From Monocercomonoides exilis PA203 (Eukaryota > Protista > Preaxostyla): DNA of 64,000 nt. The DNA lies in contig LSRY02000029.1 of NCBI GenBank assembly GCA_001643675.2, positions 1 to 64,000 of the forward strand. Direction: 5' to 3'. Numbering within the stretch: position 1 is the stretch's first letter; every line of letters starts with the position of its first letter. Below, piece after piece: positions 2,562-19,949 of the stretch. The notes beneath the pieces were generated by a model that saw nothing but the letters and a program-made list of their open reading frames with translations, had not been told where the DNA came from and did not search any database. The position numbers and the translations under genes are program-made.

Positions 2562-5516
2562 ATGAATCCTTTCAAAAGAAAACATAACGGAATTGGAAAC
2601 AAGAGCGTCAAACGGGATGTGAAAAATCTAGAAAATATTTTCGGAAAAATGTCGGAAGACCACGCCGAACTTGTTCTCACATCATTTTTACAATCTACGG
2701 AAAAGGAAAAAAACTTTTGGAGGCATTGTCCACTTTGAAAACATGTTTGTATTTGTTTAATTATAAAATACAAAAACAATTATTCTAACAACTTTATTTC
2801 ATTTAAATTTGGATTTTTTATTTACTACAGCTTTTCTGACAGAACACTACAACGAAATAGATCCTCACTCAGATTCAGAAAGCACTGAATCATTTGAAGA
2901 TTATCCTTTGACAAAATGTGATAATAAAAATAAATATATTCATAAACAACATTTTCTGCAGTTTCCATTTGTTAAAATTAAATCAACTAAAAATTCACAA
3001 ATACAACAAGAAAAACAGCTAAGCCTGAGTTCACAACAAATTAGTTCTATCAATTCACAGACAATATACAATACATCAATATTTCGCATTCCAAACATCA
3101 ACAATCCAATTTTAACATCATCATTTATGAATATTGTTCAGTCAGATCCTTCTAATATTCATTCAAATACTTCTCCAGCTCCCTCAATGAATATTGTTCA
3201 GTCAGATCCTTCTAATATTCATTCAAATACTTCTCCAGCTCCCTCAATGAATATTGTTCAGTCAGATCCTTCTAATATTCATTCAAATACTTCTCCAGCT
3301 CCCTCAATGAATATTGTTCAGTCAGATCCTTCTAATATTCATTCAAATACTTCTCCAGCTCCCTCAATGAATATTGTTCAGTCAGATCCTTCTAATATTC
3401 ATTCAAATACTTCTCCAGCTCCCTCAATGAATATTGTTCAGTCAGATCCTTCTAATATTCATTCAAATACTTCTCCAGCTCCCTCAATGAATATTGTTCA
3501 GTCAGATCCTTCTAATATTCATTCAAATACTTCTCCAGCTCCCTCAATGAATATTGTTCAGTCAGATCCTTCTAATATTCATTCAAATACTTCTCCAGCT
3601 CCCTCAATGAATATTGTTCAGTCAGATCCTTCTAATATTCATTCAAATACTTCTCCAGCTCCCTCAATGAATATTGTTCAGTCAGATCCTTCTAATATTC
3701 ATTCAAATACTTCTCCAGCTCCCTCAATGAATATTGTTCAGTCAGATCCTTCTAATATTCATTCAAATACTTCTCCAGCTCCCTCAATGAATATTGTTCA
3801 GTCAGATCCTTCTAATATTCATTCAAATACTTCTCCAGCTCCCTCAATGAATATTGTTCAGTCAGATCCTTCTAATATTCATTCAAATACTTCTCCAGCT
3901 CCCTCAATGAATATTGTTCAGTCAGATCCTTCTAATATTCATTCAAATACTTCTCCAGCTCCCTCAATGAATATTGTTCAGTCAGATCCTTCTAATATTC
4001 ATTCAAATACTTCTCCAGCTCCCTCAATGAATATTGTTCAGTCAGATCCTTCTAATATTCATTCAAATACTTCTCCAGCTCCCTCAATGAATATTGTTCA
4101 GTCAGATCCTTCTAATATTCATTCAAATACTTCAGCTCCCTCAATGAATATTGTTCAGTCAGATCCTTCTAATATTCATTCAAATACTTCTCCAGCTCCC
4201 TCAATGAATATTGTTCAGTCAGATCCTTCTAATATTCATTCAAATACTTCTCCAGCTCCCTCAATGAATATTGTTCAGTCAGATCCTTCTAATATTCATT
4301 CAAAAACTTCAGTAATTTTGGATTATAGTTTTGAGGATTATTTTATAAATTCTATTGATACTTATGATTATTTTATGAAATGCATATTTCGTCCTAAATT
4401 GAAAATAGATAACAAATCCAAATTAAACACAGATTGTATTTATGATAATGCGGAGAGTTTGAATAAATTGGAGTTGAGTGATAAAGATAGTGATGATGAT
4501 GAAAATGAATTAATGAGTATATGTGAAGGAAGATCATTGAATAATTTTGGGAAAACATGTGCTTTCAATTCTTTATGTCAATGTCTTGCTTCATTATGCA
4601 TTGATAAATGCACAAAAGATAGCAACATTTCCAAAAATCAAAGTTATTTTTGAATCTTTTGGAAGAAATTCGGAATCCATCAAAAATAGTGAATGCTTGG
4701 GGAAAGAGGAGAATGAAGAATTTTTATGAACTGCTGTTTGGGTGTCTGGATGAACCAAAAATTTTGACTGACGTGTTTACTGCAGTTATGGAATTCCTAT
4801 CAAAAAATAATTGGAATTTGAAGGAGATGTTTTTGATCCGCAGCCATAGAATAAATATGTGCACCAGCTGCCATCATTTATCTTCATCATTAAGAGGAGC
4901 AGGTTATTTTATTTCAATCGCTGGATCAGATATTGTCGGTGGGTTGAATTGTGTGTTTCAAGCCTCAGATGATTTTGCTGAGAATCTACTTTCAAATTGT
5001 GATAACTGCTGGACGAAATCTGCATTTGAAAACTGGATATGGCTTTACGATTTCCCTTTCATTTTGTGTATTTATCACAAGTTCATTGATGGAGATTATG
5101 TGAGTTCTCCTCCAATCAAATTATTCTTCAGAAGTCAAGGAATAGGCCCAAATGATTTTCATGTGTTCAGTCCTCGTGTGTTATCTTCAATTGACAATCA
5201 TTCATCTGATAGTGAGATAGTTGCAAAATACAACTTCGTTGGAACAATTATCCATTCTTCATTGAAGCATAAAGAAGGGCATTTTATTTCAATAGTCAAA
5301 AATGGAAGTTCTACTGACCATTCCAATGACAGCTTTCTGCAGTGCGATGATGACAAAATTTCAATTATTGACTTCACTAAATGGGACCAATACTGGGATT
5401 ATCTTTCAGAAGAAAAATGGAATTTTTCAATGAGTTTTTCAAACTGTTTGAAACAAAATACAGAAATAGTTCATCAAAACCCTTCTTGGATAAATGAATG
5501 TTTCATATTTTTTTAA
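2562..5516 (+). CDS. Ubiquitin-specific protease (peptidase C19/USP-like) with N-terminal 20-aa tandem repeat; frameshifted in homopolymer runs
   Basis: Cys box SLNNFGKTCAFNSLCQCL (~4534-4587), Zn-finger pairs CTSC and CDNC, His box EGHFISIVK...FLQCDDDKI. Putative exon 1 at 2562-2744 and intron 2745-2830 (GT..AG, phase-compatible). One-base frameshifts in A runs at ~2700 and ~4635. Confidence 0.75.
3127..4310 (+). repeat. 60-bp coding tandem repeat, ~20 copies (MNIVQSDPSNIHSNTSPAPS)
   Basis: Identical units every 60 bp from 3127. One 57-bp unit (3-bp deletion near 4133). Last unit partial. Confidence 0.98.
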
Positions 5517-5989: not shown

Positions 5990-7920
5990 TCTATCCCTCC
6001 TCTTTCAATATCTCTTTCCACCATCAAATAAATTCTTTGTCAAATGCCCCTATCGTTCATGTTGGAACTGAAAATAAAAGAAAAAACACTCGGAAGATTG
6101 AATTTATTAGATTTGAACAGTCATCTCTTTGAGTGTGCGAATGGAATGATTCTAATTGAGGAAGTGATTTGGATGGTGCACTTTATGTTCATTCACTGCA
6201 TGTTCAAGAAATGTGAATAATGGAGCGTTATTCTGTCAAAATTTGTTGAAAATCTCTCTCGAAAAATCCAATTTTTCATGTTATCAAGCGAGGAATGGAG
6301 GAGCAGTTGAAGTGTATGCTCCACAATCAAATTCCAAATATCACATTTTGGAAAATAAAGTCGAAAGTTATTCAATAACATGCTGGTGTGGAATTGGTTG
6401 GTATTTTGTACAACAAACAATTCCTGCAAATGGTAAATTCCTGTTTTCCAAATGCAAGTTCATCTCAAATACAGGTGGTGATTCTGCTGGTTCTTTCACA
6501 TTCAATTGGCCTCCACAAAATAAACCAAAACAATGCTTGCTCCAAGAGTGCCAGTTCATAAATAACAAAGTCGAAAATCCAACTACCTATGGTGGTGCTG
6601 CGTTGTGTTGCACAAGAACATATGATTGGATGAATGGAATGAAATTCATCACTTTCTGTTTCTTCAATGAAATACAGCTACTAACGGAAGAGGAAATGAT
6701 GTGTTTTTCAATGGTAATTCCATAACTCAATCTCCGTTTGAGAATTGCGGATCAACAACCCCAACAAAAAAGTGCGGAACAACAACACAGCTGATAATGA
6801 GACTGTCAACAGCTCGCTCCCTCTCATAAGCCAGAACAAAAATGTTGCAAACAACGGAACAGATGTTGATGGCTGTGGAAGAACGCAACAGAATCGTTGC
6901 TCCACTATGGAGTATGCAATCTATGGCTTATTCTTTTAAAAGAGGCTTCCCTCACCCTCCTCAGCTCAACATTTGCTCCCACTCAAACACTTATCTTCCT
7001 TGCTTTTGACACATAAATCAAAGGAAATGGCACAGATACCATCACCATCGCATCAAGCGGAATTCTTCAATCATCATCTTTTTTTTCAGCCATTTCTGCA
7101 CTCTACCGACAGACTCAGGGCTCCCTCACAGTCTCTGCCCTCACCGTCACCCACAACTCCACAAATACCATCACCCCCATCCTCTTCCACCTCTCCCAAA
7201 ACTACCCTTCCCTCAACCTCAACACAACCACCATCACTGGAACAACTCCGTCTTCATCATCAATCACCACACCTCTCTTCTTCCTCACTGCTGGCTCCCT
7301 CGATCTCAACCACACAGCAATCACTCATCTCACCCTTAACAGCCAAAGCATCTTCCATCTCACCTCCCTCACCACTCCCCTCACCCTCAACTCCTCCAAC
7401 ATCACCCACATCACCTCCACTATCACCCCCGCCAGCTGTGTCCTCTCCTCTGCTACCTCCCCTGCCCTCTCCCTCTCCCTCGCCAACTGCACCATCACCA
7501 ACATCAACTCAGAACAGTTCAGCCAACAGACTGCCACAGATGGTGGGTACATCTCATTCGCCTCATCTGCCACTACCAACTCGTTTTCAGTGAGCAACAC
7601 CACCTTCTCCGACTGTTGTGTGAGTGAGGATACAAGTTCTGGAGGAAGAGGCGGTGCTCTCATGATCGAGTTCAATGAAGGCTCACAAGTGTCAGAATCC
7701 TCCTTTGCCATCACCAATATCGTGTTTTCAGCCAACAAGGCCTGTGTCGGAAGAGATATGTATTTTGTGTGTGAATCATTTGTCGCTTCTGTGAAAGAGC
7801 CCTTGTTCACTTTCATGACAAGCATCACTCAGAAAGACAATTCGGCTGTTGGACATGACAGAACAGAAGCAATTGGAATTTAGATTTATAAATCTTTATC
7901 AACAGGCATACAGCTGACAA
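5990..7920 (+). pseudogene. Beta-helix (GGA/FxxN-repeat) adhesin-like surface-protein pseudogene
   Basis: Colinear with the 51531-53102 ORF (VHVGTE, GGAL, FxKCKxIxNTGGDS, MKFIxFCFF, DVDxCGxTQQxxCxTxEYA). Many frameshifts. Continues into GRGGALMI...NKACVGRDMYFVC. Confidence 0.75.
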
Positions 7921-7929
7921 TGAATACGT

Positions 7930-10900
7930 GGAAAACATGTTTGGTGTCAAAGCAATGTATTTCTGGCTATCAAAGATGCCCTGCAAGTGCACACGCAATG
8001 CGACGGGGCTTCTGAAGAAGGTGAAGAACGTTGGTAAATAATAATAAACGTGCAGACAAATTGTGAATTTGTGCGCGCAATAGAAAAACCGAAGAAAGTT
8101 GTGGAGATGGCACACAAAATTGAAGAAAACTGCTCGTATGCGCATGTGATGAAATCAACATAACTTGTCGGACATGTATTCTCTTCTTTTATAGAATTAT
8201 CTGTTAAATATGCCTTTTCATCAAAATTGCTTTCACTCATCGTTTCATCTTCTCAGACATGTTGAAGGCATGTGGCCTTGCGAAATCTCTCGAAAATTAT
8301 CCCTGCAACTGTTTGTTCAAAGAAATCTTTTCCCACCTTGCTCCTTCTTCTTCCTGTTATTCTTTCAATCTCAAAATAAATTTTGTAGAGGCAACCTTCA
8401 TGGATTGTGTGCCCGATGATCGACTATTCTTGATTTGACATTGTAGCATTTCATTTGTAAAATAATTTTTAAAGATATTCCTTGATAGAATAAATATTTC
8501 TTTCGTCTATCTGAGTAGGAATGAAAGGTGATGCTTGGCCCTGGATTTAACGGGAGTTGAATGAAATGGAAATAGGAATATTTTTAATTCGTTCATCGAA
8601 GAAGATGTTGAAGAAGAAGAATGCATAGGAGAATGAATGTTGTGTGTGGAAAATGTCTGTCTGAGAAATTAAAGCTTTCAGATCGTATTTCTCAGAATGA
8701 GAATGTTTTCATTGGCTTATTTTGGAATTCATAAAAAGATGACGATAAGCTGAAGGAATTAAATAGCAAGGAAAAGAGGCAGATAAAGAAGGAAGAAGAT
8801 GAAGTTGCAAAAATAGTTGAAGGAGTTGAAAAAGAAATAATAAGAAAAAGATGATGACGAGGAGGAAGAAGAAGATTATGAAAGCTATGAAGGTGGAGCA
8901 ATTGAGAATTGTGAAACGCATTCAATCCTTTTAATAAAGATGTTGAAAATGACTTGAATGATGTCGACCGATAAAAACACATTATTCGATGAGTTGATTT
9001 CAGATGAAATAGACAATCTTCATCACAAAATATGTGAAAGGGAAAGAGATACAAACAGATGAAGAATGAAGTCCACAAATCGTTGATTGCCTTTGAGTGG
9101 TTGAACTGCTTTGTCCCTCAGAAAAAGAAAATTATCTTTGTCCAATGATGTCAACAATTCAAATGAACTTCATGTTTGATGAGGATATTGGCAGAGAATA
9201 ATTCGAAATCGAAGAAGGCGTTGACAATTGATGAAGTTGACTTCAATTGCAAAAATTTCAAATGAAATAAGAAGAAAATGACGAATTTTATGATTATGTG
9301 ATTGATGTGTCGATTCTGGCAATGAGCATCTTTTATTGAAGTGAGACTGTTGAGAATGATAGCGAAGGTGAAGAAAAATAGAAGATGTCAGGTTTTTCAA
9401 GTCACGTTGGGCGATAGAAAAAACTGAATGTGTTCTGAATGTGAATTCTCATGCAGCTTATCAGCCCAGATAAAAGAGTCGCAACTGCAAAACATTCCGA
9501 ACAAAAATGCCAAATAAACTGCTTTTCTCTTTCTTGCAAACTCATGTTAAGCATTGTCAGGCTATGCAGCATGCAAAACAGATGGTAAGAAACGAATGAC
9601 TTCGTTGAATGCAATCCAAACAAGAATCATCTCAAAACTTCTGGATCTTTTGCAAAGGATTTCAGGGCTTCCCTCTCTTTGTGGTATTCCTGTACTTGAT
9701 CAATTTGTATTCATTGAAAGAACACCTTAAAAGAAAAATGAATGAAATAAAAGAAAATCAAACCATTTTTTTTTCTTGAAATATTTTCCTATCTCCAACT
9801 CACTCGAAATGATCAGCCCACCTGGCTTTCTTGCAATATAAAATTTCCTCTTGCCACAAAAAATTCAGACAACTGGACAATAAATGGCTGGAATAGAAAG
9901 TCATTGAAAGCACAGAATCCATTGTGAAACGAGCTGTAATATCAGATTAAAACACATAATTTTTAAATAAACAAGAAATCAACTCTTTTTCAAAGACTTA
10001 TTTAACGCCATTTCTTTGCTGATAGCTTTCCAACGGGTTTCGCGTAAATGGCAATGCGTTTGTCGTTAAGACCAGCTGAGTGTTTCGCTCTGTTCGCTTC
10101 CTCCATTGTCCTATGCTTCAATTCCCTTTCCTTTTCCACAAAGAAAATCTTCTCCCAAATAAAAAATCACGCAAAATAAGTCCTGAGCATAAGATATACC
10201 AAGTACACAACATTTCGCTCGAAATGAACAAGCTGTTCATTTCAACTTTTCTAACATTTTAATCGCTTTTTTTGTATCTTGCTTTATTCATTTTTCATTC
10301 AAAATATCACAGCCGATGTTGCATCATGTATTTTGCAACATATAACTTGATTCAAACTTCATGCAACTTCCCTCATCAATTCACTTTTTGGAAGCAATCG
10401 ATGCAAACAGCCACCCGCTCCTCCATTTGAAGGCTAAATCCCTGTTCTTCTTCAATGCTATAACTCGCATGAGTGCATCTGTGTTTGCGCTCAATAGTAG
10501 CTCAAATATGCTCAGGCTGCTGCAAATAATTTATCAAAAATCTTCACTAATAAAATTATAGGTTGCAGACCCTTATTAAATAACCAAACAATAAATGAAT
10601 GTTTTGTTGCCCTTCGTCTTGCCTGTTTTGAGGTAAAAGAATGAAAATGATGCAGAGGAAAAAGTTTATGAATGTGCATCTTCAGGTATTTTAATCGATA
10701 TTTGTGACTCTTTTGAAGTAGATGTTCCTTCAACATTCAGAAAATGAACCAATATGTTGCTTCATCTTGATTTTTCCGAAGGCAGCAGGACCAGTAACAA
10801 ATGTTTTATGGTGTGCATGGGGCATTACTGAATCACTGCTTATGCGATTTTATCTGTCCTTTTTTTATTATTATGAAATAAATAAATTTTTTATTGACTT

Positions 10901-11850: not shown

Positions 11851-12575
11851 AAATTATTTGATATGGCTCAATCTGTTTGTGAATTTTTTGTGTTTATGTT
11901 TTTCTTATCAATATGAAGTTCATTTACCATATTCAATATTTTATCTCAATGACAGCATCACATGAAGCCTTTTCATTATCTTCTTCAGAAACATCATTCA
12001 ATTGATTGCACATTTCTCTTTTACTTCATTTCTTCTTCTTATTCTTCTTTACCATCTTCTTCTTCATTCAACAAAAATGAAGCAATTCTTCAATTAAACA
12101 GTGCTTTCTCCAAGTATCTTAATTTTTCTGAAAAATGTTTTTTTCATCTTTCAACGTAACTTATGTTTATTCTTTTTCTCTTTCAACAGTGTCTGTTGTA
12201 TTCTAATAAATTGCTTGTATTGTTTCAAAAGCATGATAGATTTTGTTCAATTGTCAGATGAATTGATTATTTAACAAATAACAAAAAGTGATGAAATGTT
12301 CATGTTATCAAAAAATGAAAAAGAAATGAAAATTGGAAAATATGTGAACTTCAAAAAAATTTTTAAAACATAAAAACAAATAATAAACGATATTAGAATG
12401 ATAACGAATAAATGAAATAAAAATTCGATGAAGATGCAGTTTCAGATACATTTCTTAAAGGTGAATTGTTTCTATTTCTTGTCGCGATGGTGGACTTTTA
12501 GCATTTTTATGAGTCTTCTTCAAAAATTTCTCAAGCACGTTATATTTTTCAAAACATTTTAATGTTGAAATAAAT

Positions 12576-13064
12576 AATGTGAATATGGTTTTTCATTTCA
12601 TAAAATGCATTTTTATTTAATCATAAAAAAAAAATTGAATATATACATATATATTTTTAAGACTCAATAAAATACAAAAACCAAAAAAAAGTCACCATTT
12701 CATGAAAATATGTCAAATTGAAAATCTCGATCACAAAAGTGGTCACTAATTTTTCTTCAGATTTTGCAACAAACAGACATAAAAAGATGTGGGGAAGCGG
12801 TTTGTGCGGAAATCTGAGAAAAAATTAGTGACCACTTTTGTGATCGCCAGTCATTTCAAGTTTCAGTTTTATAATAGTTCCGATCGTTCAACGGATCAAA
12901 TCTGATGAGAACCTTAATAAAAGTGTTTTTCAAAATGACTGGCGATCACAAAAGTGGTCACTAATTTTTCTCAGATTCTTTATGTCTGTTTGTTGCAAAA
13001 TCTGAAGAAAAATTAGTGACCACTTTTGTGATCGAGATTTTCAATTTGACATATTTTCATGAAA
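12576..13064. repeat. Left terminal repeat with nested palindrome (12698-13064)
   Basis: Arm 12698-12856, loop 12857-12932, arm 12933-13064 (inner arm has a ~28-bp deletion). Four alternating copies of CGATCACAAAAGTGGTCACTAATTTTT. Confidence 0.95.
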
Positions 13065-13344
13065 ATTTTCGTATAGAAATATTTATTTATTATTTATATT
13101 TTTTTTTCATATATTTGTTTATGATTTATTGTTATTATGTTATTATAATTAGTTTTAATGAGAAACATTTATGCGTTGATTTTTGGAAAAAGACAAAAAA
13201 TAGTGATATCAGTTTCCAATATCAATTCATCATTTTAATAAAATCAAATTGCATAAATACTTATTTTTTGTGTGAAACATGGTGTTTTTCACCGAAAAAG
13301 AAATGTGACTTTTGTTCCATAATAAATTCAGAAAAATATAAACA

Positions 13345-16300
13345 ATGAATATTTCCAAACCTCAATCGACTCTATATTCTCGATGCAAAGTATTATGGAA
13401 TGAAATTAAGCGCATCGGCGGAGATGACGTGGATTCGTTACTTGCCTATTTGTTTTATTCTTACAGGCAATCAACTTCTGTAATTAACGATTTACTGAAG
13501 ACATTAAACGGTTTGATTTTTTATTTATTCATGTTTTATATAGAAAATTTCATGAACTGTCATTGTTGTTATTTTCTTAACTATTAATTCAATATTTTTC
13601 TCATGAACAGAATATCACATAAAGCTGCTGGAAGACCTGTCTGTGGTGTACAACAACGCTCCTTTGCACACTCAGACAGTAATGCTGCAAGCGCTGTCAC
13701 GCAACACATCATTATCCGATTTACAAGACTATGGATATGATGTCACAGAGGGAAAATTTATTTACGCGAAGCAAACGCTGAAGAAAAACCAAGGATTTAT
13801 CATCACTCCTCTAAAACCTCATCTTCCGTCTTGCAAAAGTGGTTTGTTTTTATTTGAATTTTTTTGAATAATTTTCTCTGTTCATTTTAGGCTTAAATGA
13901 ACAGGATTGGGAAAAGGGCAACAACTGGATGTTAGCCCATTCCACTGAAGCCTCAACTACTCTTCAATCAGCAAAGAAAAAGCAGCGAGCTGAGCCAGAT
14001 TACACAAGATTTATAGATGAAGATGCCTGGGAAAATGAAATTGTTACAGAAAATTCTTCTTCAAAGAAAAAGAAATCTTCATTATCAGAAAAATCACATC
14101 AACAAAATAAAAAATCAAGTTCTATTTCGGAAAAAAATTCATCTGCATCAACTTTTTCATCGTCTGAAGCTATTGATGCTCCAATCAACACCCCAATAAG
14201 GAGAGAAAGGAGGTCAACAAAAAATAAAAAGAATAATTCAAATCACAAACGTCACTCTTCTCCATCTCCAATACCAATTCACAAATTCTTCAAAACAAAA
14301 CAATCGTCAACATATTCTTCTTCTTCTCCTCTTCCTCCTTGTTCTCCTTCTTCTTCTTCTCCTCCTCCTCCTCCTTCTTCTTCTTCTTTTTCTTCTTCTT
14401 CCTCTTCTTCCTCTTCTTCAAATTCTTCTTCTTCAAATTCTTCTTCTTCAAATTCTTCTTCTTCAAATTCTTCTTCTTCAAATTCTTCTTCTTCAAATTC
14501 TTCTTCTTCAAATTCTTCTTCTTCAAATTCTTCTTCTTCAAATTCTTCTTCTTCAAATTCTTCTTCTTCAAATTCTTCTTCTTCAAATTCTTCTTCTTCA
14601 AATTCTTCTTCTTCAAATTCTTCTTCAAATTCTTCTTCAAATTCTTCTTCTTCTTCTTCTCCTCCTCCTCCTCCTTCTTCTTCTTCTTATTCTTCATCTT
14701 CCACATTTTTATTTTCATCTTCTTCCTCTTCATCCAAAAAGCAACAAAAAATGACAATCAATTCTTCATTAACTTGCAATTCTTCTTCATATTTAAGAAA
14801 TGAAAATGATTGGGTGAGCAAGCAATTGCTTGAATATGTCACTTCTCCCACTCTTGTTCCTCCACAGGCATTTCAAGATCTTCTATCTTCATTTGCAAAA
14901 GACAGCAACACTTCTCCATCTCCACAAAACACTCATTCAGACGAAAGTTATAATTCAAATTGTAAAAATAATATGAATATCATTTCAAATAATTACACAA
15001 TGGATTTTCTTCCTGAAATTCAATCTCATTCTCCATCAATTTCTTCAAGTGTCAAAACCACTTCAATCGCTTCATCAAAAACAAAGAAAGGATTAAAAAA
15101 TCTTGGAAATACTTGCTATCTTGCCTCTCTCCTTCAATGTATATCTTCAATCACTTCACAAAAACAATCAATAATTAAAACCATTTCATTTCAAAACAAT
15201 TTATCTTCTCGAGTATTGAGTGTTTGTCAACAACTTACCAAAGATGGAATGACAGTGCGTTCATGGGTCCCATCACTGATCAACAAATGGGAAGACTTTT
15301 GTGGATATAGAAGCAGACAGCAACAAAATGTCATCGAGGCGTTTGACAATCTTCACCAACTTCTTCAAAAAAATGAGTTAATAAACAAGGATACCTTCAA
15401 TCCTGTTTTAATCACACATTTCAAATGCCAAAAATGTCAAAAAATCACATCACACTTCAATGAAATTTGTGACAATGTCGTTATCAATTCTTCTTCTCCT
15501 CACAACGGCCTATCTTCTCTTTTTGCGACTGAAGTTTTAAACGAAAAGAATTGTGTTTATTGCGATGAATGCAAGGAAAAATGCTGTGCTGCGAGATGGG
15601 AGGAAATGGCTGCATTTCCAGAGGTGCTAGCCCTCTGTCATGAATGCACTGATTCTGCTAGTTCAGCACCTTCGAGAACATTACTAATGGAAACAGACAG
15701 AGTCAATCAGCGCACGTTTTGTAAAGGATTTTCTTCTAAAGATATTCAACATCTTCAAAAAGATAATCAAGAAACAATCATATATCATTTTTCTGGACAA
15801 ATACTATTCAAACGTCTGGATCAACAAAACGGACATTACATCGCAGTTGTGAAAAGAAAAAGTGGAATCAATAGTTTTTGGAATATTTGCAATGATGTAA
15901 GTGTTTCTGAATTCGATAGTGACAAATGGAGTTCTTCATGGAAAGATCTTTATGTTCAAGGCTACGTTCCTTCACTTTCATTCTACATCAAGGAAAAAAC
16001 AAAACCAACACTGTCAACTCTTCAATTTGGTGGTTCATCATCTTCTTCAGAAACATCAAATAATAACACTTCAAATAACTCATCATCATCGTCAACAACA
16101 ACAACTGCTACGTCATCTGCATTCATCACACCACCTCATCGAACAACTTCCATTCCTCCACTCTCTTCGTCAATTTCAACAAGTTATGGATTGGAAGCAC
16201 TGAAAGAAAGAAGAAAGAAAACGGGCATCTTTTCTCCCAATGAGAAAAGATTAATCTTCAAGCCCAAGACAAAATTATGGAAAGAGTTTTCAGAAGAAAC

Positions 16301-17486
16301 AAATATTAAAGTTTCATTATCTCACTTCTACAAACTCACAACCAACTTCTCCAAAGCAAAAAGGCGCACAGATCTTTGTGGAATGTGTGAGAAGTTGAAC
16401 TATCTCGAAAACAAACTGAAGTCATCTCAAAACAAAAATGGACTGTCTGAAGCAGAGTTTCATACACTCAAACTTCTTCGTCAACACCGACTTGTTGCAG
16501 AAATGCAACGAAAACACTATCAATCAACTGTTGATAATCTTAAAGAGGGAGAAGCAGTCTTCGTCTTCGACTTTAAAGAAAAATGGAAACTCCCTATCAG
16601 AAAAAATCAACTTCAACAGGAATTCTTCAATTATCAACAAGTTTCTCAATTCACAATCATCTCTCTTCAAAAAATAAATAATCAACTTGAAAAACGAACA
16701 TTCAACTTCTTCTCCGACTGCCTCTCAAATGATCACAGATTTGTCATTGAGTGTCTGGAATCTGTGATCAAAAGGCACTTCTTCTCAGACACTCACACTT
16801 TTAAGTTCTTCTGCGATTCGGGTCCACACAACCGAAATCGCTTCCTTCTTCACTTCATCCTCTCCAAACAATCGAAACTTCTCAAAAAGAAAAATACTCA
16901 ACTCAACTTCTTCGCTGAGCACCATGGAAAAAATATCTGTGATAGTGAATTTGGTGCATTAGTGAATGCAATCGACAACAATCTTTCGACAGAACACATC
17001 ACCACCCTTCATGACTTGATCAACTTCTTCGAAAACAATATGAACACTTCGATATCTGCTTCTTCAACTTCTCAATCAAACATTTTCTCAACATCATCAT
17101 CAAACTCTTCACAATCTTCAACATCTGTCAATAACTTTGAGCATGAGAGATTCTTTGAAGAATATGTACCATCTCAACAAATCTCATGGCCATCATTGTC
17201 AGTTCCCCACATGAAGGACTACTTGTATTTTGAGCGCAAAGGCTCATTTGTCTCTGCTTCAGCTGTTGGATATCTTCCTCAACGCTCTCTGGTTGCCCTC
17301 GAATCTTCAACAATGAAAGAAAAAGTTCAACGTTCAAGAAAGTCATTTCACTCTGATATCACATCATCTAACTCTTCTCTTCTTTCTCAATCTTCTCAAG
17401 ATCTTCTTTCAAGGAGATTTGAGCTTCTTCTTGACTCTTCTTCTTTTAATGAATCTCAAAATTGTATTAATGGTGTCCCTTATTAA
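13345..17486 (+). CDS. USP (C19) deubiquitinase fused to Sola-like DDD transposase, ~1330 aa, 3 exons
   Basis: Exons 13345-13510, 13611-13841 and 13891-17486 join in frame via GT..AG introns. USP: GLKNLGNTCYLASLLQC (Cys 15114), QQNVIEAF, CQKC/CDEC, GHYIAVVK (His 15834), WNICND. Transposase: DLCGMCE...H, VFDFKEKW (D 16569), FCDSGPHNRN (D 16815), FFAEHHGKNICDSEFG (D 16941). Confidence 0.9.
14421..14650 (+). repeat. 15-bp coding tandem repeat (NSSSS)n, ~13 copies plus 12-bp variants
   Basis: AATTCTTCTTCTTCA units, flanked on both sides by SPPPPPSSSS-encoding direct repeats. Confidence 0.95.
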
Positions 17487-17490
17487 GAAA

Positions 17491-17628
17491 CTAGTTGTTG
17501 TGTATGCTTAGCTGGCACTCTATCGGAAGGGTGCTGGACATGACTGTTCGTATTAGATATTGCAGCCCGAAGGCTGCAATATCCGGACCTGGATACGACG
17601 AACAGCCTCCCAGGTGCACAACAGTTAG
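17491..17628 (+). ncRNA. Putative structured RNA (multi-stem with pseudoknot) directly 3' of the transposase stop codon
   Basis: GC-rich island. Stems 17491-17504/17615-17628, 17512-17521/17528-17537, 17544-17551/17598-17605, perfect 12-bp 17556-17567/17572-17583. Pseudoknot ACCTGG 17587-17592 with CCAGGT 17610-17615. Confidence 0.6.
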
Positions 17629-18381
17629 AATCCGATTGTTTTCTTGTGCTTTTTGTCCCTATAATGTCCCTATTATTGAATTGGTTATTATCCCTATAAT
17701 AATTGTATTTATCGAGATTCATTAATAAAGAGAGTTGTGAGGGAATTCATTGATCTTTGGGTAAGGTTTTTGGAAGGGAGAGTTGTTGAGAGTGTGAAAT
17801 GTTGTTTTATCATTGTGTCTGTCTTTTTTCTTTGTTGGATTTGATCTTTTTGAGTCAAAGTTAGAGAAATATCAGAAAGGGGAGAGAGGATAAAAAACAG
17901 ATGGAAAATAGACAAGTTAGTTTTTGTACTTTTTATATAAGTATTCTTTTTTGTTTGGAATTGTCTTTGATACCACGAATTTGTTGAAATTGTACTATTT
18001 CTACTTATATTTTTTATTGTTCAAAATTGTTGATATTTAGTTGATATTTGGTGATTGTTTAATGATTATGTGATTGAATTATGTTTCTTTTGAAAGTTGA
18101 TGAATCTGATTAGAAAATTTCTGACTGTTTTCAATTTTTTAATGATCAATATTGTGAAGTACTTTTTGTTTTTTATGTCATTTTGATTGCAAAACGATTG
18201 TTATTTTTTAACGTATATTTTTCACTTTTCATAGTAAATTTTTCCACTTGTTCACTAAACAATTTATTGATAAACATGTTATATATTTATAAAGATATCA
18301 ACAAAAATAAATTTTTCATAATAATCGATAATATTACAAAACAAATTTCAAAAATTTATCATCATACAACAAAAAGCAAAT

Positions 18382-18898
18382 ATTTCATGAAAATATGTCA
18401 AATTGAAAATCTCGATCACAAAAGTGGTCACTAATTTTTCTTCAGATTTTGCAACAAACAGACATAAAAAGATGTGGGGAAGCGGTTTGTGCGGAAATCT
18501 GAGAAAAAATTAGTGACCACTTTTGTGATCGCCAGTCATTTCAAGTTTCAGTTTTATAATAGTTCCGATCGTTCAACGGATCAAATCTGATGAGAACCTT
18601 AATAAAAGTGTTTTTCAAAATGACTGGCGATCACAAAAGTGGTCACTAATTTTTTCTCAGATTTCCGCACAAACCGCTTCCCCACATCTTTTTATGTCTG
18701 TTTGTTGCAAAATCTGAAGAAAAATTAGTGACCACTTTTGTGATCGAGATTTTCAATTTGACATATTTTCATGAAATGGTGACTTTTTTTTGGTTTTTGT
18801 ATTTTATTGAGTCTTAAAAATATATATGTATATATTCAATTTTTTTTTTATGATTAAATAAAAATGCATTTTATGAAATGAATAACCATATTCACATT
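18382..18898. repeat. Right terminal repeat with nested palindrome (18382-18777)
   Basis: Arm 18382-18541, loop 18542-18617, arm 18618-18777 form an essentially perfect palindrome, followed by the outer inverted segment. Confidence 0.95.
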
Positions 18899-19949
18899 TT
18901 ATGACAATTATAAAAGCGACAATAATAGCAATCAGTGCGATAATTTACATCAAAAATGTGTCAGCCCGCGAATGGAATATCAATGAAAATTAAAAAATAT
19001 AAAATCCACATTCAGAAATTTATCTGAAAGCGATTCTTTTTTTCATGAGTATTTTTTTGTGATTCAACTCGTAAACATCAAATGCTTGCTGTTCATTTCG
19101 TATGCGGCACAAGGCACATATTGCAATCTGTTCTATGCATCGAACGCAAACTCTGAAGCGAATATAAACCGAATATTAGTGGATGAAAAGCGAGAGACGA
19201 ACGACACGCTTTTTCGGATGCAAACCCCTCTGTGTAATTCGCTCGCAAGTTCCACTTACCGGACAGTCTGTACACATACAATGGGAGAGAGTGTGGCAGC
19301 TTTATGGGGTCATATTTTGGATGTAACACATTGCTGATTCAGATTAGTGTGGTGTTAGCAGTGGAAAAAGAGGATGCAATGGTTTCATCCAAGGGCTTAA
19401 CATGACAACTTTGGACATGTTCAAATTGACATCGTGTGTGGCAGATGCGCTGGAGAAGGAGAAGATCATCCGGCCGAATGAGATTGTGATTGTGGAGCAG
19501 ATGCAGTGCATGTCACTTGAAGAGGAGGTATTTGAAGAGGCGAAGCTTGATGCGCCCAGAGCAGCAAACTTTGTGGACCAGCAAGTGAATACAGCTATTT
19601 TCGGTTAATTTTAGTTTTTTTCTTTCAAGATTGCCTGGATTTTCGAAGGAGAGGGAGGTCAGGAAAGCAGAAAAGAAGGCAAAATATTTTGAGCTTGATT
19701 AAAGAAAAGAAAAAAATTCCAAACAGATCGACTTTGGCAATGACGAAGATTTGAAGCGATGTGGTGTGAGTTGAATTTTTCTTTTAATAATAACAAAAAA
19801 TTTTTGTGTGTTAATTTTTTAATGTATTTTTGAATTTTTGAAATTTTCTGAACTTTTTTCCATCATTTATTATGAACTTCATCTTTTTCTTGTGAGTTGG
19901 CCGAATCGGTCATTATATGATGTGTTTATTTACAATCTTCATCGAATTT

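Follow-up and report, generated by a model that had tools for sequence, protein, structure and literature searches.

Why would a DNA transposase carry a ubiquitin-specific protease (USP) in its own reading frame? The question is raised by a locus in the first 64,000 nucleotides of contig LSRY02000029.1 of the oxymonad Monocercomonoides exilis (we refer to this whole stretch as the window), where an open reading frame of 1185 aa on the forward strand (13929–17486) runs without interruption through a UCH/USP domain and, downstream of it, a DDD domain. We confirm this USP–Sola2 fusion. The USP domain is built into a Sola2-type transposase gene and is maintained by selection across the M. exilis copies. 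The segment 12417–19059 is likely one of the many copies that make up a family of cut-and-paste DNA transposons belonging to the Sola2 superfamily.

The gene probably starts with the ATG at 13345 and contains two short introns. Its three exons (13345–17486, about 1330 codons) probably encode a single protein, predicted to consist of a conserved N-terminal region, a Ser-rich tract, the USP with its zinc ribbon, a linker, and a zinc motif followed by a DDD RNase H-like transposase. The parts of the gene model are as follows.

13345–13510, forward strand: putative exon 1, carrying the start codon; the ATG is kept in 20 of 21 copies, and in the annotated paralogue MONOS_11334 the N-terminal residues run across the exon and the donor (GT directly after 13510)
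13511–13610, forward strand: putative intron 1, GT..AG, 100 nt; stop codons of the coding frame lie inside, and the junction gives MONOS_11334 residues
13611–13841, forward strand: putative exon 2, a strongly conserved N-terminal region; open in 20 of 20 copies, 67–96% aa identity
13842–13890, forward strand: putative intron 2, GT..AG, 49 nt; donor and acceptor kept in nearly all copies
13891–17486, forward strand: exon 3, with the Ser-rich tract, USP, linker, Sola2 DDD domain and stop codon; contains the frame 13929–17486
14290–14760, forward strand: Ser/Asn-rich low-complexity tract with short tandem repeats, seen in the translation and as repeat pairs; its length differs between copies, whose ORFs measure 1028–1296 aa

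In the alignment of copies, identity falls to 0.49 upstream of the ATG at 13345, and the third codon position is the most variable one in exon 2. The junction across intron 2 (...SCKS-G-LNEQ...) is found in MONOS_11334 as well. An earlier note on this DNA had described one uninterrupted frame from 13345; this description holds from 13891/13929 onward, whereas 13345 is a conserved ATG that probably opens two short upstream exons. Neither these exons nor the N-terminal 374 aa of the long frame have a match in Pfam. Exon 2 probably encodes the N-terminal domain common to Sola2 transposases, as its weak match to the N-termini of Sola2 relatives suggests (hhalign probability 78.5%, E 1.7e–5; the signal comes from profile comparison only, with no BLASTP match to the N-terminus of Sola2_PPa-1). 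Because of this match, the USP appears to sit inside the transposase, as an insertion and not as a terminal addition. The placement of the USP just before the transposase core, as originally described, is correct insofar as the domain lies upstream of the DDD core, but the USP is apparently embedded between that core and a conserved N-terminal region.

A full USP domain with Cys box, His box and zinc ribbon had been proposed from the letters, and profile searches bear this out. Pfam UCH (PF00443) matches with E 4.5e–11 and 43.3 bits versus a cut-off of 23.9, over profile positions 2–245 of 254, and PDB sequence matches include USP21, USP15, USP14, USP2, and USP36.

15090–15932, forward strand: USP (peptidase C19, Pfam UCH), residues 388–668, from the Pfam profile, PDB matches and copy alignment
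15114–15116, 15834–15836 and 15894–15896, forward strand: catalytic codons C396, H636 and D656, in the Cys box, the His box and then N655-D656
16023–16034, forward strand: QFGG motif, residues 699–702, directly after the USP; invariant in 21 of 21 copies

The catalytic Cys, His, and Asn-Asp align with those of USP21 and, together with the four zinc-ribbon cysteines (C500, C503, C545, and C548), are invariant in all 21 aligned copies; dN/dS of the domain is 0.19 at dS 0.85. Neutral decay of the triad in other copies, an outcome the earlier note had allowed for, is thus absent. The AlphaFold model of the USP, made from a shallow 16-sequence alignment, is unusable (pLDDT 34.7), and hence the fold of this domain is read from sequence alone. 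The best matches outside the M. exilis genome are a plant UBP25-type protein and tick USP8 (24–27% identity, E about 1e–7 in a large database); at such low identity, the search gave no donor gene that could be recognised. A stand-alone USP at 2809–4653, 10 kb upstream, was considered as a close relative or donor and rejected, since the two have just 22 residues in common, all near the Cys box. Low identity to outside proteins and the failure of the model to fold would also suit a catalytically silent USP kept purely as a ubiquitin-binding or scaffolding module, but this is very improbable in view of a triad and four zinc cysteines that stay invariant in 21 copies despite a mean nucleotide difference of 20% in the domain.

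The transposase half is not visible to the simplest searches: Pfam on the C-terminal half alone returned nothing significant, and word-based protein searches retrieved M. exilis paralogues only. The transposase domain has 712 homologues at E ≤ 1e–3, and alignment of the core with 67 homologues, the most similar ones outside M. exilis (68 sequences in total), defines its features.

16239–17063, forward strand: Sola2 transposase core, residues 771–1045, from homologues, alignment, AlphaFold model and BLASTP
16377–16388, forward strand: CxxC (C817/C820), followed by H853; zinc motif of the transposase
16569–16571, 16815–16817 and 16941–16943, forward strand: DDD triad D881, D963 and D1005, invariant in 68 sequences

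In domain numbering, the residues invariant in this set are C87, C90, D151, D233, H269, G270, K271, and D275. The sole Pfam domain among the transposase relatives is DUF7869, found in 9 of the 68 sequences. The AlphaFold model of the domain (pLDDT 83.5) has the order b1-b2-b3-a-b4-a-b5-a; of the three Asp, the first lies on b1, the second directly behind b4 and the third where the helix following b5 begins. Its best structural matches (Z 8.9–10.5) are the PFV, HIV, and SIV integrases, Metnase, Mos1, IstA, and TnsB, with the top Z of 10.5 among retroviral integrases, Mos1, and IstA; Foldseek matches are IstA, Hermes, and Mos1. As modelled, the DDD domain is an RNase H-like integrase/transposase core, in agreement with the C-terminal fold anticipated for this protein. 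In the transposase core dN/dS is 0.04 at dS 0.43, so that among diverged copies purifying selection holds for the protease and transposase domains alike.

The Sola superfamily was reportedly described by Bao et al. in 2009. The likeness of the core to Sola-superfamily motifs, noticed earlier, can now be narrowed to Sola2, since the transposase matches the published Sola2_PPa-1 of Polysphondylium pallidum (phmmer E 5.6e–17; BLASTP 29% identity over 250 aa, E 4e–25), with the CxxC and the three Asp aligned. The sequence P0102 (PPL_04538, Heterostelium album PN500) is identical to 'Sola2_PPa-1' in the supplement of PMC3627910, and the core motifs also fit Sola2-1_HM (supplement of PMC3985635).

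Candidate members of the family number in the hundreds and are found on nearly all M. exilis contigs. From 472 candidates, at least 93 copies distributed over most contigs were scored: 63 are without a stop in the transposase part and 30 are broken, while open frames of at least 1000 aa are present in 53 copies. Since 53 or more long open frames of this genome repeat the architecture and the catalytic motifs are invariant in 21 of 21 aligned copies, a chance fusion is excluded. The family is dispersed and multi-copy, with intact and decayed copies both present, as is typical of Sola2. Flanks are common to many copies for more than 1 kb on both sides, and therefore part of the copy number is segmental duplication. 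The window itself is situated at a contig end, inside blocks that are duplicated on other contigs. On contigs C33 and C80, judging from coordinates only, internally deleted loci apparently lie between the same flanks. No empty site was recovered for the family in the sequence examined. The assembly paper left 35% of the M. exilis genome as 'unclassified repeats' (PMC8767320), and the USP–Sola2 family provides a classification for part of them.

The gene is flanked by inverted repeats both in the window and in other copies.

12417–13069, no strand: left inverted-repeat block, internally palindromic; outer limit approximate, similarity to A-type copies beginning at 12417
17487–18249, forward strand: conserved non-coding 3' region in all subfamilies; alignments of B-type copies reach 18209–18249
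18367–19059, no strand: right inverted-repeat block, outer limit approximate; internal palindrome 18367–18570 versus 18589–18792

Arms 12576–12885 and 12979–13069 pair with 18589–18898 and 18378–18468, respectively, and weaker homology to other copies extends outward beyond 12417. Within the conserved 3' region lies a GC-rich stretch (17491–17628) with no Rfam family, and the palindromic ends give only sub-threshold microRNA-like hairpin matches. The repeats are unusually long and vary among copies: the shortest measure 170 bp and are 80% identical, the longest reach 1754 bp or more with 99.9% identity. Sola elements are expected to produce a 4-bp AT-rich target-site duplication. In eight copies, whose true ends are approximate, no direct repeat was found at any candidate boundary (A-type 12417/19059, B2 left, the inner 'AAACAATG' of B1 copies, and the outer long-arm ends).

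This last result, together with strong purifying selection on most copies, the long common flanks and the position of the window in duplicated blocks at a contig end, could also be explained if the family consisted of domesticated USP–transposase host genes whose number has risen through segmental duplication in subtelomeric and repeat-rich parts of the genome. However, the candidates number in the hundreds and occupy nearly all contigs, a third of the scored copies have stop codons, and subfamilies with differing terminal regions each keep inverted repeats at their ends. Arms that are 99–99.9% identical in some copies suggest recent events, and the apparent internally deleted loci on C33 and C80, again from coordinates only, point the same way. 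We therefore regard domestication as unlikely and retain the reading of a transposon family.

A UCH domain is absent from all 67 of the most similar transposase homologues of other organisms, and to date the fusion is therefore limited to a single family of a single species. No USP–transposon fusion was found in the literature searched (Repbase and Dfam lay outside its scope), and the earlier suggestion that a USP–Sola fusion has not been catalogued stands within the same bounds. To our knowledge, no protease was previously known in the Sola2 superfamily.

What might the transposon gain from its protease? In the proposed mechanism, the DDD domain would cut and rejoin the element ends, and the USP domain would be an active deubiquitinase travelling with the transposase. 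The target judged most likely, with somewhat less than even confidence, is the transposase itself, from which the USP would strip ubiquitin; alternative targets are proteins of chromatin or of repair where transposition takes place. Both options had been raised in the earlier note, the first as a possible protection of the transposase. We know of nobody who has shown what proteases of the ubiquitin and SUMO systems do for transposons, and the role of the USP would equal the unproven one that has been suggested where other transposons carry Ulp1, OTU, or VTD proteases. More tentatively, the transposase may need its own USP, which would work either as a deubiquitinase protecting the transpososome against ubiquitin-based host restriction or in self-cleavage at QFGG that frees an active transposase. 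In both cases, if true, a USP-class protease would for the first time have been shown at work in transposition, and the question why so many mobile elements encode ubiquitin-system enzymes could be approached in a tractable system of just one protein. Since both activities reside in one polypeptide, protease and transposase can be mutated separately.

The QFGG motif deserves attention here, as the USP might be a self-processing protease (not, or not only, a deubiquitinase) that cuts after this motif and frees the transposase half from the N-terminal half. Such a role would fit the invariance of QFGG, its Gly-Gly end, which is like that of the ubiquitin C-terminus, and the length-variable Ser-rich linker that starts immediately behind it. 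However, cellular USPs normally require the ubiquitin fold and not merely a GG tail, no ubiquitin-like fold was detected ahead of QFGG, and the motif could be conserved simply because the USP domain ends there structurally. Although viral papain-like deubiquitinases also process polyproteins at xxGG sites (PMC9741609), self-processing is unlikely, and we favor a deubiquitinase acting on the transposase or on chromatin or repair proteins.

With the fusion, the USPs, the largest class of deubiquitinases, join the proteases that unrelated transposons have picked up repeatedly. As in cellular USPs, the Cys box, His box and Asn-Asp motifs and a zinc ribbon of four cysteines stand in their standard order in the M. 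exilis domain, which covers the UCH profile nearly end to end; from the cellular proteins themselves (human USP21, USP15, USP2, and USP36 included) the domain is very divergent. Known transposon-borne proteases are Ulp1/C48 in MULE, CACTA, and Zisupton/KDZ elements, OTU in Helitrons, and VTD in Helentrons (PMC9741609, PMC5751038). The M. exilis element resembles them in encoding a protease of the ubiquitin or ubiquitin-like system, in its case of predicted papain fold, whose catalytic residues are conserved and whose part in transposition is unproven; it differs in that its protease is a USP (C19), its superfamily is Sola2, and protease and DDD transposase form one polypeptide. As in Sola2, there is a CxxC...H zinc motif, a first Asp of DFKE(N) type, a second of D-x-G-x-H type and a third in HGK-x-x-CD, with the DDD triad in a predicted RNase H-like fold; the 4-bp AT-rich target-site duplication of Sola2 was not found at its approximate boundaries. 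The inverted repeats of the dictyostelid Sola2_PPa-1 and Sola2_DFa-2 are 12–22 bp (PMC3627910), whereas those of M. exilis measure from hundreds to over 1700 bp and contain palindromes. Finally, some dictyostelid Sola2 elements picked up Fanzor1 (PMC3627910), and the M. exilis element likewise has an extra protein-coding module, but in this case it is a protease of the USP class, encoded within the frame of the transposase itself.

The open reading frame (ORF) of 1185 codons at 13929-17486 (+) contains a UCH/USP domain at residues 388-668, which covers nearly the whole Pfam profile (E 4.5e-11; score 43.3 bits, cut-off 23.9 bits). By sequence, its best relatives among solved structures are USP21, USP15, USP14, USP2, and USP36. 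The motifs cited in an earlier note, made from the sequence alone, are all present: a Cys box with C396, a zinc ribbon of four cysteines (C500, C503, C545, C548), a His box with H636, and N655-D656. The predicted structure of the domain is too poor to show a fold (pLDDT 34.7); judged by its sequence, the domain probably has a USP fold and is apparently intact. The nearest USPs outside the M. exilis genome are plant UBP25-type proteins and tick USP8 (24-27% identity), and no evident donor gene was found among the proteins of 650-2070 aa that this search covered. A separate USP-like gene lies 10 kb upstream, at 2809-5516, in two adjoining ORFs (614 and 288 aa), a layout that points to either an intron or a frameshift near 4650. 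We rejected this stand-alone USP as close kin of the transposon domain, with which it has the Cys box alone in common.

Downstream of the USP, the frame carries the CxxC motif (C817, C820) and the three aspartates (D881, D963, D1005) that the earlier note had also cited. Pfam gives no significant match for this C-terminal half alone. An exhaustive phmmer search with the transposase domain against 1.84 billion representatives returned 712 matches at E<=1e-3, over about residues 40-310 of the domain. In an alignment with 67 of the matches, C87, C90, D151, D233, H269, G270, K271, and D275 are invariant (C817, C820, D881, D963, H999, G1000, K1001, and D1005 in ORF numbering). The AlphaFold model obtained from this alignment is confident (pLDDT 83.5, pTM 0.80) and has the order three strands, helix, strand, helix, strand, helix, with the catalytic aspartates in strand 1, just past strand 4, and where the helix following strand 5 begins. 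All-against-PDB comparison matched residues 126-345 of the domain model to the PFV, SIV, and HIV integrases, Metnase and Mos1, IstA, and TnsB (Z 8.9-10.5), which bears out an RNase H-type fold; Foldseek matched IstA, Hermes, and Mos1. Pfam finds DUF7869 in 9 of 68 transposase relatives and UCH in none of the 68, and DUF7869 clusters were likewise matched in the ESM Atlas.

Sola was reportedly defined by the group of Bao and Jurka. One of the phmmer matches, PPL_04538 of Heterostelium album (formerly Polysphondylium pallidum) PN500, is identical in sequence to their transposase 'Sola2_PPa-1' (Bao and Jurka 2013 supplement, PMC3627910). The phmmer E value of this match is 5.6e-17, and direct comparison gives 29% identity over 250 aa (E 4e-25) with CxxC and all three aspartates aligned. 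Sola2-1_HM, as aligned within the RNase H superfamily (PMC3985635), likewise has matching core motifs. The C-terminal half belongs with the Sola2 transposases, so that the Sola assignment of the earlier note is both upheld and narrowed. Another, divergent Sola2-like family is present in M. exilis (MONOS_18616, 42% identity), and a 1578-aa relative occurs in another oxymonad, Blattamonas nauphoetae (BLNAU_20614). Since no UCH domain is detectable in either protein, the gain of the USP appears specific to the USP-bearing M. exilis family.

The gene probably does not begin with the ORF. 
Homology across all subfamilies starts at 13335-13352, i.e. at the ATG at 13345; 20 of the 21 copies keep this ATG, upstream of which identity is down to 0.49. 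Exons 1 (13345-13510), 2 (13611-13841), and 3 (13891 onward) are proposed, totaling 3993 nt, or 1330 codons and a stop; the putative intron borders show conserved GT and AG, third codon positions are the most variable, and the annotated paralogue MONOS_11334 has the residues predicted from the first two exons and the beginning of exon 3. All 20 copies examined keep exon 2 open (67-96% identity), and as a profile it aligns with an N-terminal region that Sola2 relatives conserve (probability 78.5%, E 1.7e-5). Because BLASTP of exon 2 against the N-terminus of Sola2_PPa-1 gave no match, its equivalence to this common N-terminal region is suggestive only. If the equivalence is real, some 700 aa, made up of the Ser-rich tract plus the USP, would be an insertion that separates the N-terminal domain from the catalytic part. 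The Ser/Asn-rich tract (14290-14760) consists of short tandem repeats that differ in number among copies, so that ORFs range from 1028 to 1296 aa, and explains the strong negative GC skew at 14-16 kb. A GC-rich stretch (17491-17628) begins 5 nt past the stop codon; the 3' non-coding region around it is conserved in all subfamilies to about 18249, and Rfam gave no family for the stretch at E<=1.

A six-frame search of the genome (82.3 Mb, 101 contigs) with the C-terminal 455 aa yielded 472 candidates. We scored 93, all 89-100% identical in protein: the C-terminal part is without a stop in 63 and broken in 30, and 53 have open frames of at least 1000 aa. For 21 copies drawn from different subfamilies, the long open frames were aligned.

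Pairwise Nei-Gojobori estimates by region
Stretch preceding USP: dN/dS 0.47, dS 0.78
USP domain: dN/dS 0.19, dS 0.85
Linker: dN/dS 0.31, dS 0.39
Transposase core: dN/dS 0.04, dS 0.43

None of the 21 copies shows a change in the Cys box, either zinc-ribbon pair, the His box, or N-D, though adjacent residues do vary. The USP is thus kept in other copies with no decay of its triad, in line with the intact protease read by the earlier note, and USP and transposase are both under purifying selection in a large, dispersed, and partly decayed family. Pairwise nucleotide distances in the USP part (15081-15998) and the transposase part (16239-17483) are nearly uncorrelated (Spearman 0.16, 20 copies); some pairs differ by 0.8-1.3% in the former, yet by about 5% or more in the latter. 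The copies look like mosaics, probably through ectopic gene conversion or recombination among subfamilies.

Inverted blocks flank the gene, and other copies (L026, L038, L030) have inverted arms of their own.

Inverted blocks and arms
Window, 12576-13069 and 18367-18898: inverted blocks flanking the gene, each internally palindromic
L026, 2558-2758 with 7645-7845: arms of 201 bp, 99% identity
L038, 1355-2224 with 7131-8001: arms of 870 bp, near-identical by alignment score
L030, 1-1754 with 6739-8493: arms of at least 1754 bp, 99.9% identity

The shortest inverted arms are about 170 bp long (80% identity). In a further copy, L023 on contig C8, the inner segment is inverted relative to the same flanks, which fits recombination between the inverted blocks. 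Together, the variation in arm length, the near-identity of arms, and the L023 inversion point to recombination or gene conversion between arms. Similarity to related copies spans 12417 to 19059, with weak homology further out; other subfamilies have 13335-18249 alone in common, and their terminal regions differ. Four-bp target-site duplications are a hallmark of Sola. We found no direct duplication at any candidate element boundary inspected; many copies have flanks in common with one another, and the window starts at a contig end, within blocks duplicated on other contigs. Positions 1-31000 are a mosaic of other repeats: contigs C91, C87, C92, C80, and C53 carry further copies of its 2-6.5-kb blocks (90-99% identity), located at their ends or close by, and a 1.2-kb unit is repeated many times on contig C25 in both orientations.

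The sole close database proteins of the ORF are 'uncharacterized proteins' of Monocercomonoides exilis. Public models of element copies (MONOS_11334, MONOS_12024, MONOS_16375) are fragmentary, and MONOS_11334 omits ORF residues 87-527, Cys box included; the USP-transposase architecture is therefore invisible in the annotation. Unclassified repeats make up 35% of the M. exilis genome (PMC8767320).

The element encodes a single protein that combines a DDD transposase of Sola2 type with a USP that is apparently intact. Directly after the USP domain, QFGG (16023-16034) is invariant in 21/21 copies and is followed by a length-variable Ser-rich linker; its sequence makes it a possible ubiquitin-like Gly-Gly cleavage site. 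A secondary and less likely possibility is self-processing, in which the polypeptide would be cut at this invariant motif. The likelier reading is deubiquitination: the DDD domain would carry out cut-and-paste transposition, and the USP would free the transposase, or proteins present at the site, of ubiquitin and may thereby increase the success of the element. The same role has been proposed, never proven, for the VTD and OTU domains of Helitrons (PMC9741609). Among the papers searched, outside Repbase Reports and Dfam, we found no USP-bearing transposon and no report of a USP-Sola fusion, which was also new to the earlier note. Protease-bearing transposons are known with the C48, OTU, and VTD classes (PMC9741609, PMC5751038), whereas the protease of the M. 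exilis element is a USP.
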